Shown here: positions 26,696-29,815 of the stretch, in pieces
How the letters are laid out: each line of letters starts with the position of its first letter
How positions within the stretch are numbered: the first letter of the stretch is position 1
From: Hyaloraphidium curvatum SAG 235-1
Lineage: Eukaryota > Fungi > Monoblepharomycota
Reading direction: 5' to 3'
Assembly: GCA_025558095.1 (NCBI GenBank)
Contig: JAIVFI010000003.1
Location: forward strand, 930,001 to 994,000
Length of the DNA: 64,000 nt
The notes under the pieces: generated by a model
Told to the model about the DNA's origin: nothing
Database searches by the model: none
Seen by the model: the letters and a program-made list of their open reading frames with translations, nothing else
Position numbers and translations under genes: made by a program

Positions 26696-27346
26696 ATGCG
26701 CGCGCCGACCGCCGCGCTCATCATCGCCATCCTCGCGGCCGCCGCGGCGAGGTGTGCCCGCCGCGTCCGCGCCGCCGCGCCGCGCTCACCGACCTCCTCC
26801 GCAGCGCCGCCGCCGCGCCCGCCGGCACCGTCTTCAGGCGCGCGTGCGCCGACTGCCCCGAGTCCACGTACTGGTGAGCACGCGCACCGCACCCGCCACG
26901 CCCCCGCCGACCCCCCGCCCCGCAGCGAGTACGGCTTCCCCGGCACGCCCGACGGCGCCGTGGCGTGCACCGCCGCCGCCACCGGCGAAGCAAGGTCGCT
27001 CTACAGGCGCTACGAGACGCTCGAAGCAGACTGCCTCCTGCGCCCCGGCGCCGCGGGGCTGGTCTACCAGGCCGGCAGCTACTGCAGCGAGGTCACGGGC
27101 GCGGTGGGATCCTACGGGGGCAAGTACTACGAATGCAGCACCCCCGGCACCGTCCTCGCGACGTGGACGCTCCCGGCGTCCGGCGGGACCCCGGGGACCT
27201 GCCTGGCCGTCTCGTACATCACCCCCAGCGGCCCGCCGACTTACTTCAAGTACGGCGCCAACTGCAACACCATCGAAGACTACGGCGCGTCCTCGAGCTG
27301 CACGGGTTCCTACACGCTGAACACGCTGACGACTCCGTACCCTTGA
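26696..27346 (+). CDS. Small secreted cysteine-rich protein, carrier-cargo family member A
   Basis: Signal peptide; introns 26752-26804 and 26874-26925. The spliced protein reads RRACADCPESTYCEYGFPGTPDGAVAC..RSLYRRY, followed by a Cys/Gly/Tyr/Thr-rich domain. Confidence 0.8.
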   Translation: MRAPTAALIIAILAAAAARCARRVRAAAPRSPTSSAAPPPRPPAPSSGARAPTAPSPRTGEHAHRTRHAPADPPPRSEYGFPGTPDGAVACTAAATGEARSLYRRYETLEADCLLRPGAAGLVYQAGSYCSEVTGAVGSYGGKYYECSTPGTVLATWTLPASGGTPGTCLAVSYITPSGPPTYFKYGANCNTIEDYGASSSCTGSYTLNTLTTPYP

Positions 27347-27498
27347 GTCCTGGACAACCATGTACGACTGATCGTGTAGTGGCATTTTCAAGAGACGTCG
27401 TTGCTTGAATGGGTCGTCATAGCGCCTGTCCGGCCCGCACAACCTGTTTCCTCCCATCTCCATTCGCATCCGACCTTGATCCTCGCAGCCAAGCACCG

Positions 27499-28131
27499 TC
27501 AATCCGGTCCCCGATCCGCCCCCTCCCCCCCGTCCCTCCCCAACCACGCCGCGAACCCGCCCACCGTCGCCTCCATCCCCCTCGCCCCCTCCTCCCCGCC
27601 CTTCCTCCCGACCCCGAGGTCCTCCAGCTCCCACGGCTCGCCACCCCGCCAGAGGTACGCGGCCGGCAGCGCCTCGCACCCTAGGTCCGCCGCGACGCCC
27701 GGGTCGTCGCCGGCGTCCAGCTCGAACAGCTCGATGCGGAAGGGGCCGGCGCCGCGCGCGGTGAACGACGGGCGGAGGTGCGGGTGGACGGAGGCCAGCC
27801 GAGATTTCAGGGCGCGGCAGACGGAGCAGGTCTGCGAGGTGACCAGGACAACCGGGAGCGGCTCGACCGATGCGGCCGGGCCAGTCGTGTCCGACGCGTC
27901 CGGCGTCCCGCTGCCACCCACGTCCTCCGCAGAATCGCGATCATCGCGTCCCGCAGCGCGTTCCGGGGGTGCCAGCGCGTCGAGCACGGAGTAAAAGTCG
28001 TGAGAGGTGAGGACACGCCAGGGCGGTTTCGCGGCCGCGGAGAGGAGGCGCGGGCGGGGGGCCCGCGCGGAGAGCCGGTGCGGGGGAAGCAACGCGCGGG
28101 AGAGGCGGGAGAAGAGGAGGGTTCGGGCCAT
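27499..28131 (-). CDS. Thioredoxin-like protein (CSVC), probably mitochondrial
   Basis: Arg/Leu-rich presequence; VVLVTSQTCSVCRALK, LFELDA and cis-Pro motif GCEALPA. Confidence 0.75.
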   Translation of the reverse strand: MARTLLFSRLSRALLPPHRLSARAPRPRLLSAAAKPPWRVLTSHDFYSVLDALAPPERAAGRDDRDSAEDVGGSGTPDASDTTGPAASVEPLPVVLVTSQTCSVCRALKSRLASVHPHLRPSFTARGAGPFRIELFELDAGDDPGVAADLGCEALPAAYLWRGGEPWELEDLGVGRKGGEEGARGMEATVGGFAAWLGRDGGEGADRGPD

Positions 28132-28677
28132 GTTCGATCTCACGACGAGGAGCGTGAGTCTACCACTTGCATCACCCGCCGCCCTCCCGTCCGCCGTGCG
28201 TGCTCCCTGGCTGCGGCAACCATCCCGATCCCGAGTCGAGCCTCCGAGGAGCCTCCAGGAGAGCTGCCGCGAACGCGAAGCGTGATCCAATACTCCAATG
28301 TTGCGAAATAGATTCTGTGCCGCGCAAAATTCGCAGGTATGGAGAGCGTGTCCGCAGGCACCTGGTCAAACACATTGTCCGTGAACCGCTTTCAATCGAG
28401 ATCGTCCGCGGAGTGTGAGCCCTTCCTGCAGGTGGCGGCGTATGCATGCACTCTGGGACGAATCGAAGCACGGCAAGCGATGTCGGCGCTCACTCTGAGT
28501 CACTCCCGGCGATGGGGACGATGGGAGATTGTGATCCGCGAGCGGGGGATTCATGAGTAAGCGCTGTCGGCGCTCACTCTTGCGTCACTGCCAGCGATGG
28601 GATCCTTGGGGGATTCCCGGTCCCTCATCCCTTGGCGAAAGAGTCTTACCACCACCACCACAACACCTTCAGCAGCC

Positions 28678-29273
28678 ATGAAGTCCGCCGCGGTCCTGGC
28701 GCTCGCCGTCTGCGCGGTCCTCGCTACGCTTGCAAGGTGACCCCGCCGCGCCCCGCCGCAACGCGCCGCCGCCAACCCGTCCCGCTCGCCCACCTCAGCC
28801 CCGTCGCCGCCCGCCCCACGTCCACAGGCCACGTGCTCTTTGCCCGGTCGTGCGCCGATTGCGGCGAGGACACCTTCTGTGGGCGCACCCCTTGCCGCTT
28901 CCGCAGATGACGTCGTCGCTGACCCCCCAACTCCCCCCCAGGCGAATTCGCCTACCCCGGTGCCCCCGAAAACCAGGTCGCCTGCATCTCCAACGCCATG
29001 ACCCGCAAATCCCTGTACCGCCGCTACGGCTCCGCCATGACCAGCTGCGACGGCTACACCGCCAACGGCTCGTGCCAGAACATGATCACCAACGGCTTCG
29101 TGGACGCGGCCACGTGCGAGGCGCTCTGCGTCGCCGACGCGGACTGCAAGGCCTTCTCGCGCCGCGAGGACAACGGCCTCTGCGAGCGTTACTATTGGGT
29201 CGCGGCCAAGGTTCCCGAAACCAACGTGGTGTTCAAGGTCAAGGGCACCTGCCCGGGCGACACGTGCCCCTAA
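28678..29273 (+). CDS. Small secreted cysteine-rich protein, carrier-cargo family member B (PAN/apple-like C-terminus)
   Basis: Signal peptide; introns 28737-28798 and 28879-28941. The spliced protein reads ARSCADCGEDTFCEFAYPGAPENQVAC..KSLYRRY, then CEALCVADADCKAF..GLC. Confidence 0.8.
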
Positions 29274-29815
29274 GAATGGTGCGTCGTGCGGATCCGCGTG
29301 CCGCCGTGTGCTGATGGTTCCGTTGCGGATGGGGATGCAGCTTTCGGCGCGGAATCCTGCGGGGCGCAGCCTGAGGATGCAGTCCCGCCTTCCCTCCTGC
29401 CCTTTGTCTTCTTTGTACGACGTCTACTAGCCATTACTAAAACGTCTTCTTTCAATCCTGCATCGACAAGTCCTTGCCTTCAAATATGACGCTATGCTAC
29501 ATTTCATCAACCGACTCGGCTCTACCTCTTCAACTCTTCAATCCAGCCGTCGTACCCTGCAGGGAACGACATCGATTCACACTTCATTAAGTCGACCACA
29601 CCCGCACGGGAGTTTACGGGTCGAGCAGGGATGTTCGATGCGTCAGAGCAATCGATTGCTTGCCTTGCCCCAAGCCCCTTGCCCCCCCATCCGTCTCCCG
29701 CGGCGCCACAGGCCACATTGTCCGCTCCTCGAGCACAGCGTCGACCGCGACCCTAAAATCCGACCATCGTGTTGAGCGACGGTTCGGCCCCCGCAACCAG
29801 GGAATGCCCGTCGCC

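Follow-up and report, generated by a model that had tools for sequence, protein, structure and literature searches.

Genes A and B of Hyaloraphidium curvatum join a conserved four-cysteine module to different C-terminal domains across a putative kexin-type junction

The window analysed here is a stretch of 64,000 nucleotides (nt) from the genome of Hyaloraphidium curvatum (positions 930001-994000 of contig C3; the genome comprises 31.9 Mb on 55 contigs with 60-75% G+C), and it contains two three-exon genes, gene A and gene B, whose products share an N-terminal region and carry different C-terminal domains. In both products a putative signal peptide is followed by a conserved module with four cysteines (Cys), a junction that reads LYRRY, and a C-terminal part that we term the cargo. 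H. curvatum, named in the NCBI records as the organism of the encoded proteins, is an aquatic, free-living member of the Monoblepharidomycetes. Gene A comprises exons at 26696-26751, 26805-26873, and 26926-27346 (+) and encodes 181 amino acids (aa); its module starts at 26827, the Arg-Arg codons of the junction occupy 27005-27010, and the Tyr at P1' is encoded at 27011-27013. Gene B comprises exons at 28678-28736, 28799-28878, and 28942-29273 (+) and encodes 156 aa, with the module starting at 28833, the Arg-Arg codons at 29019-29024, and the P1' Tyr at 29025-29027. Our analyses indicate that both genes belong to a large family built on one secretory cassette, which is known only from Hyaloraphidium and one uncultured relative. 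The features of the two genes are as follows (positions are those of the window; a slash marks a splice site).

26696-26751 (+): gene A exon 1, putative signal peptide, with its 3' end in the split Ser codon AG/C (translation; RNA joint 26751>26805; identity to NCBI protein P0001)
26752-26804 (+): gene A intron 1, GT..AG, phase 2 (skipped in X1 contig)
26805-26873 (+): gene A exon 2, linker and N-terminal half of the module (VFRRAC..C.....Y and, from the third Cys codon, TG) (translation; X1 contig)
26874-26925 (+): gene A intron 2, within the third Cys codon, TG/GT..AG/C (skipped in X1 contig)
26926-27013 (+): first part of gene A exon 3, second half of the module (EYGFPG..VAC..SLYRRY) (translation; family alignment)
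27014-27346 (+): gene A cargo, 6-Cys, predicted 8-stranded up-and-down beta-barrel, with the stop codon (AlphaFold2, VIA-align, Atlas search)
28678-28736 (+): gene B exon 1, putative signal peptide, from the family-consistent ATG (translation; X1 contig; family comparison)
28737-28798 (+): gene B intron 1, phase 2, splitting Ser AG/C (skipped in X1 contig)
28799-28878 (+): gene B exon 2, linker and first half of the module (translation; X1 contig)
28879-28941 (+): gene B intron 2, third Cys codon, slid by one base, T/GT..AG/GC (exact X1 joint 28878>28942)
28942-29027 (+): first part of gene B exon 3, second half of the module (translation; family alignment)
29028-29273 (+): gene B cargo, predicted 8-Cys PAN/apple domain, with the stop codon (VIA-align, Foldseek)
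29278-29339 (+): gene B intron in the 3' untranslated region, 62 nt, GT..AG, five bases past the stop codon (X1 joint 29277>29340, cut +1)

The only public run with this stretch, X1, is stored as assembled contigs whose RNA label was only a guess, and these contigs skip all four coding introns of genes A and B exactly, with GT..AG ends. Spliced transcripts are therefore present in run X1, and expression and splicing of the two genes agree with the proposal. The spliced model of gene A is identical to NCBI protein P0001; P0002 shares the splice sites of the gene B model, with its start at ATG 28597 further upstream. An earlier note on this DNA had predicted two genes of three exons each; the four introns seen in the X1 contigs and the splice sites of P0001 and P0002 establish these gene models together with their expression and splicing.

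The upstream start of P0002 adds 27 residues before the putative signal peptide (28597-28677), and comparison with the rest of the family favours ATG 28678 over 28597 as the probable start of gene B. The RNA contig over gene B starts at 28595, just 2 nt upstream of ATG 28597.

Comparison of the two products by BLASTP yielded an alignment with an E value of 2e-14 and 44% identity over 59 residues that ends exactly at LYRRY, and nothing significant was found beyond that motif. Intron 1 is in phase 2 in both genes and splits an AG/C Ser codon where the putative signal peptide ends. Intron 2 interrupts the module's third Cys codon, as TG/GT in gene A and as T/GT in gene B, a slide of 1 nt. The same note had remarked on a shared signal-peptide region with an intron in the same Ser codon and on similarity that stops at the junction, and both observations hold. 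The resemblance between A and B is far beyond chance because the module recurs at at least 150 places in the genome.

The module is about 45 residues long, and its consensus is [VLI]-F-x-R-[SA]-C-x2-C-x5-[FY]-C-E-[FY]-x-[YF]-P-G-x-P-x-G-x-V-A-C; the fourth Cys is followed by 7-10 variable residues and then by L-Y-[RK]-R-Y. Its start lies, at the median, about 32 residues into the protein, behind a hydrophobic leader. With the signal peptide judged by hydrophobicity, a hydrophobic 10-residue window (Kyte-Doolittle >= 1.8) precedes the module in 61 of 63 members. AlphaFold2 models of full proteins, built from 71-row alignments, predict the module as three short strands with a predicted local distance difference test score (pLDDT) of 86-92. 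The module most likely has two internal disulfides, a pattern that, like the function of the signal peptide, we infer.

No Pfam family matched the module even at E <= 10, a module profile returned only chance matches from PDB sequences (best E 0.85), and comparison with ESM Atlas features gave no usable match. Literature searches for the module motif and for work on the Hyaloraphidium secretome found nothing relevant. By sequence and feature comparison, the module is a new domain family, in agreement with the earlier suggestion that it is not a named domain.

A six-frame search of the genome with the two exon-3 products gave 77 and 128 matches, mostly to the first 30-45 residues, which correspond to the module. 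A profile of the exon-3 half of the module was then matched against the genome; 150 of 191 candidates were scored, all with E <= 2.5e-5 and on nearly all contigs, and the size of the family is therefore given as a lower bound of at least 150 loci. Screening of 1.84 billion representative proteins with a profile of the full module yielded 89 matches at E <= 1e-3, including 61 at E <= 1e-10. The source was traced for 35 of the 89, and these comprised 34 proteins from H. curvatum and one from a metagenome contig. A word-based search with the exon-3 queries recovered only each gene's own NCBI protein, and a query restricted to the module recovered three more paralogues.

Protein P0089 is encoded on an ENA metagenome contig (L041; 954 nt, 66% G+C) without a DNA match in the genome of H. 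curvatum, and the protein is only 37-41% identical to its closest H. curvatum match. It keeps the same module, the intron in the Cys codon, and LYRRY. A scan of Joint Genome Institute (JGI) metagenomes with a tightened alignment gave 43 pattern matches with no relative among them. The family therefore exists in at least one organism besides H. curvatum, and it was seen nowhere else among the traced sources of the profile search. The family is previously undescribed and lineage-restricted.

Intron positions are shared widely in the family. The intron in the third Cys codon, evaluated at 28 loci, falls at TG/GT in 23, is slid by one base in two (gene B and locus L009), and is absent in three. 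An intron at the end of the putative signal peptide occurs in 12 of 15 members mapped to annotated proteins, and in seven of these 12 it splits a Ser codon as AG/GT. Exon shuffling at the boundary of module and cargo was rejected as an origin of the architecture, since the second half of the module and the cargo share one exon in the members mapped.

Comparison across the family also drew attention to individual annotations and to the placement of loci. Five annotated proteins (P0043, P0052, P0060, P0080, and P0083) read through the module intron in frame ('...FW' plus intron residues, then 'SEF.YPG') and are probably mis-annotated. P0062, which combines a VIT family match with the module and a PAN domain, and P0049 (1318 aa) resemble fused gene models. 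Many loci lie less than about 35 kb from the starts of contigs (C28 at 1.6-17, C3 at 9.6-17, C16 at 9-32, C9 at 5.8-6.9, C31 at 4-9.5, and C41 at 2.5-10.7 kb). Judged at contig starts, family loci may be enriched in subtelomeric regions. Some loci form tandem groups, such as the three on C17 (634-636 kb). Two pairs of loci, C17:636361 with C47:81829 and C30:62486 with C48:18035, have identical scores and identical translated third exons and are either recent duplicates or alternative haplotype contigs.

The cargo of gene A is predicted by AlphaFold2 with pLDDT >90 over residues 81-180. Residues 73-181 aligned by VIA-align with avidins, lipocalins, and designed barrels with Z scores of up to 7.8, and a fold search of the Atlas returned generic barrels only, with template modelling (TM) scores of 0.36-0.53. 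These barrel scores appear to reflect generic topology and do not establish homology to calycin-like barrels. Foldseek also matched gene A to sliding clamps at TM 0.16, which was rejected as meaningless. For gene B, residues 76-152 aligned with plasminogen PAp at Z 10.3, and the next scores were 9.3, 9.1, and 9.0. In total, eleven chains reached Z >= 8, including the apple domains of factor XI/kallikrein, HGF N, and domains of TgMIC4 (8.6-9.3). The top Foldseek matches were all PAN domains. Pfam scans of the exon-3 products and of the full proteins yielded only a weak match of gene B to PAN_1, at 16.5 bits and under the cut-off of 21.4. The cargo of gene B is thus predicted to adopt a PAN/apple fold. 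Whether the two C-termini differ in fold had been set beforehand as a test of the proposed architecture, and the models assign them to a beta-barrel in A and to PAN/apple in B.

The diversity of cargo extends well beyond these two genes. All-against-all BLAST of the post-junction parts of 90 proteins defined a PAN-like class with 8-10 Cys (16 clustered members plus about seven singletons that match them in size and number of Cys), a class with 12 Cys (11 members), the barrel class (seven members), two Cys-poor beta classes (five and four members), and a Stig1-like class (three members), with several pairs and about 30 singletons remaining. Pfam matches among the 90 members comprised EGF, Stig1, NHL, PAN, leishmanolysin (M8 peptidase), and the glycine-rich ALK_LTK_GRD; no toxin families were among them. 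Several members carry Cys-free, Thr-rich beta domains as cargo. The lengths of the cargo range from 32 to >380 residues, and the smallest is that of P0030 (111 aa), whose 32 residues hold six Cys arranged as C-C-CC-C-C, as is typical of inhibitor cystine knots. In a few short annotated proteins of the family, the sequence stops right behind the module. Further members with diverse cargo, which the earlier note anticipated, are therefore numerous in the profile searches, the Pfam matches, and the cargo clusters alike.

Sequence conservation is distributed very differently in the two parts. Modules share 51-57% identity when their cargo is of one class and 52.5% when it is of different classes, whereas cargo of the same class shares only 29-33%. 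The module has four Cys and Cys counts in the cargo are mostly even or zero, which suggests that each part can form its own disulfides and fold independently. On a tree of the module, cargo class changes 23 times, compared with 25.6 times in shuffles; the tree, built from 44 columns, does not resolve, and one fusion per class and repeated swapping are therefore not distinguishable on it.

Junction statistics were compiled for 72 representatives. P4 is Leu in 70, P3 is Tyr in 65, P2 is Arg in 63 and Lys in eight, P1 is Arg in 67 and never Lys, and P1' is Tyr in 70; the motif L-Y-[RK]-R is present in 66 of the 72. Information content is about 4 bits per position across the junction and then falls to <1.8 bits at P2'. 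In the major pattern of Kex2 sites, as quoted in a preprint on SnTox3 (bioRxiv 10.1101/2020.05.27.120113), P4 is aliphatic and preferably Leu, P2 is Lys or Arg, and P1 is Arg. To judge from its sequence, the LYRR junction matches this pattern. The interchange of Arg and Lys at P2, together with the lack of Lys at P1, is an asymmetry like that of a protease site and is not expected of a purely structural basic pair. In structural alignments of A and B, the cargo domains begin 1-5 residues from the junction, at residues 71-76 of A and at residue 76 of B, and outside the leader the lowest pLDDT is found at the junction (60 for residues 61-70 of A; 72-74 for residues 61-80 of B).

The genome also encodes candidate proteases for such a site. 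The P-domain family of convertases gave 11 genome matches above its cut-off, including C21:106766, C33:286159, and C17:596445. Three of these loci were scanned; at two of them an S8 subtilase and a P domain share one open frame, and at the other only a P domain was seen. This suggests that the H. curvatum genome has several kexin/furin-like genes, with at least two clear loci; many fungi have one. Both the fit of the junction to the kexin consensus among the 72 representatives and the presence of kexin-like genes accord with the Kex2/furin-type cleavage that the earlier note had in mind.

The best-supported reading of these data is a lineage-restricted secretory cassette, in which a signal peptide precedes a folded pro-domain that has four Cys and ends in a kexin-type site, and which stands before many unrelated extracellular domains. 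Under this reading, the signal peptide of exon 1 would route the protein into the secretory pathway, where the module would act as a common pro-domain and as a folding or sorting handle. A kexin/furin-like convertase would then cut after Arg-Arg and free the cargo with an N-terminal Tyr. From the data above we infer both the cleavage and the role of the module, and we consider it somewhat better than an even bet that the module is cut off the cargo at the junction. In favour of this reading, the cargo domains start at the junction and conservation ends one residue past Arg-Arg. Both module and cargo are predicted with confidence, with a dip in confidence where they meet. A knottin-like cargo of 32 residues is of a size normally made from a propeptide. 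Finally, the module is almost equally conserved within and between cargo classes, and the cargo is far more divergent.

Several observations weigh against cleavage. Sites of the form [KR]R are not depleted in the cargo (28 observed versus 14.4 expected from shuffles), and gene B has a dibasic site inside its predicted PAN domain. A second dibasic motif, F-[RK]-R-S, occurs in about half of the members on the N-terminal border of the module and within a predicted strand. At P3 and P1', the near-invariant Tyr goes beyond the needs of a kexin and points to an additional or different role, for instance in binding or structure. The dip in pLDDT may reflect the variable loop before LYRRY or alignment rows that end at the junction. 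The fungal pro-domains known to be removed by Kex2 are disordered and unconserved, unlike the module. Lastly, the annotated members that consist of the module only would, if their models are real, imply that the module has a function of its own.

The main alternative is that the module is a stable N-terminal domain that is never removed and that might serve as a wall or matrix anchor, as a Tyr cross-linker, or as a binder of a common partner, with LYRRY having a structural or binding function. In favour of this alternative, folding of the module is predicted with confidence (three strands, pLDDT 86-92), Tyr is near-invariant at P3 and P1', and dibasic sites are tolerated in the cargo. Many cargo types are adhesive or interaction domains (PAN, EGF, NHL, and Stig1-like) that would suit a common anchor, and module-only proteins are among those annotated. 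However, the alternation of Arg and Lys at P2 with no Lys at P1 is not expected of a purely structural motif, and conservation ends abruptly one residue past Arg-Arg, where the cargo domains begin. The junction motif is moreover in the least confident stretch of both models, and it is difficult to see how a knottin-like cargo of 32 residues would stay joined for good to an anchor larger than itself. We regard an uncleaved module as possible but rather unlikely.

A more far-reaching form of the pro-domain reading is a dedicated export cassette, in which the folded, disulfide-bonded pro-domain would be recognised by the expanded convertases, and perhaps by a sorting receptor, and the lineage would have joined it repeatedly to unrelated domains, which would give one processing-controlled route for >150 extracellular proteins. 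We consider this version doubtful. In such a cassette, the freed four-Cys peptide of about 40 residues might also be active by itself.

A further alternative is that the module itself is the product, namely a four-Cys peptide of about 40 residues that is freed by cuts at [VLI]-F-x-R/S and L-Y-[RK]-R/Y, is co-produced with each cargo, and has a signalling, antimicrobial, or metal-binding activity. Both flanks of the module are of the form aliphatic-aromatic-x-Arg, with Arg before the first Cys in 65 of the 72 representatives, the module is more conserved than any cargo, and module-only gene models exist. Yet the N-terminal flank is predicted as a beta-strand of the module's own sheet, P2 of this flank is Ala or Val in 29 of the 72, and >150 genes for nearly one peptide would be unusual, which together make this alternative very improbable. 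That the resemblance of A and B is due to chance, low complexity, or annotation artefacts of a GC-rich genome, as the Ala-/Pro-rich composition of GC-rich frames (which can yield spurious similarity) and the retained introns in some annotated members might suggest, is already refuted by the BLASTP E value of 2e-14, four invariant Cys, a conserved intron position, spliced transcripts, 150 genomic matches (best E 2e-17), and the same module in an independent metagenome organism.

Among known systems, the putative secretory cassette most resembles, in its layout, several families of processed precursors. Effectors that carry a pro-domain processed by Kex2 (K2PP), such as SnTox3, ToxA, and SIX1/4/6, likewise have a signal peptide, a pro-region with Leu(P4)-x-[K/R]-Arg at its end, and a functional domain after it, and their pro-region is thought to help folding or trafficking (bioRxiv 10.1101/2020.05.27.120113). 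In the family described here, a signal peptide is likewise predicted (61 of 63 members by hydrophobicity), whereas the pro-domain is predicted to be ordered (pLDDT 86-92) and not disordered. Disorder is predicted for the pro-domains of K2PP effectors, which also lack conservation from one effector to another, while the H. curvatum module is folded in the models, has four Cys, and retains about 52% identity across at least 150 genes. K2PP effectors also come from plant-pathogenic fungi, whereas H. curvatum is a free-living saprotroph.

The conotoxin superfamilies and the frog precursors of dermaseptin type are large, lineage-specific families in which a conserved signal and propeptide and a basic processing site precede divergent mature products. 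The H. curvatum family resembles them in its conserved cassette and divergent products, and P0030 has a knottin-like peptide with six Cys. The mature parts of conotoxins and dermaseptins are short, however, whereas cargo in H. curvatum spans 32 to >380 residues and clearly different folds. The Cys-rich, apparently folded pro-part of H. curvatum, with no intron at the boundary between pro-part and mature part, also differs from those precursors.

The RXLR motif of oomycetes and the PEXEL/TEXEL motifs of apicomplexans are short linear motifs that are cut by aspartic proteases in parasites exporting proteins into hosts. The likeness lies in a conserved element soon after the signal peptide, hundreds of proteins with diverse C-terminal domains, and a protease of the secretory pathway. 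In contrast, the element in H. curvatum, a free-living fungus, is a predicted disulfide domain of 45 residues with a putative kexin-type site.

Bacterial polymorphic toxin systems comprise dedicated secretion machines, toxin C-termini, and adjacent immunity genes. A conserved N-terminal part with swapped C-terminal parts is common to both, but the 90 proteins scanned here hold no toxin domain, and the family appears to use the ordinary signal-peptide route. The likeness to effectors and polymorphic toxins drawn in the earlier note is therefore weak, given a free-living organism and cargo without toxin domains, and its label of a "secretion system" gives way to the ordinary signal-peptide route in place of a dedicated system. 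Effector-like gene architecture is, moreover, no evidence of pathogenicity. With respect to PAN/apple domains, the cargo of gene B shares the predicted fold but lies below the Pfam threshold and is fused to a new module.

Conserved prepro regions in front of variable products have precedents in animal venoms, in frog skin peptides, and, more loosely, in effectors processed by Kex2. A conserved, folded, Cys-rich cassette that precedes many unrelated folds, and does so in at least 150 genes of an early-diverging, free-living fungus, is not known to have been described previously. The module flags a large share of the H. curvatum secretome that is now annotated as 'hypothetical protein', and comparison within the family corrects several gene models. 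If the module is indeed cleaved, the family would be a natural system for how one pro-domain serves many cargos, and the module would be a candidate for a portable secretion or folding tag. Should the dedicated export cassette prove true, it would represent a eukaryotic plug-in tag for secretion and activation with no described counterpart in fungi.

Between genes A and B lies a gene on the opposite strand (27499-28133, -). Its product matched no Pfam family; the gene is expressed, as indicated by an RNA contig at 27753-28138, and it has a C-x2-C motif.

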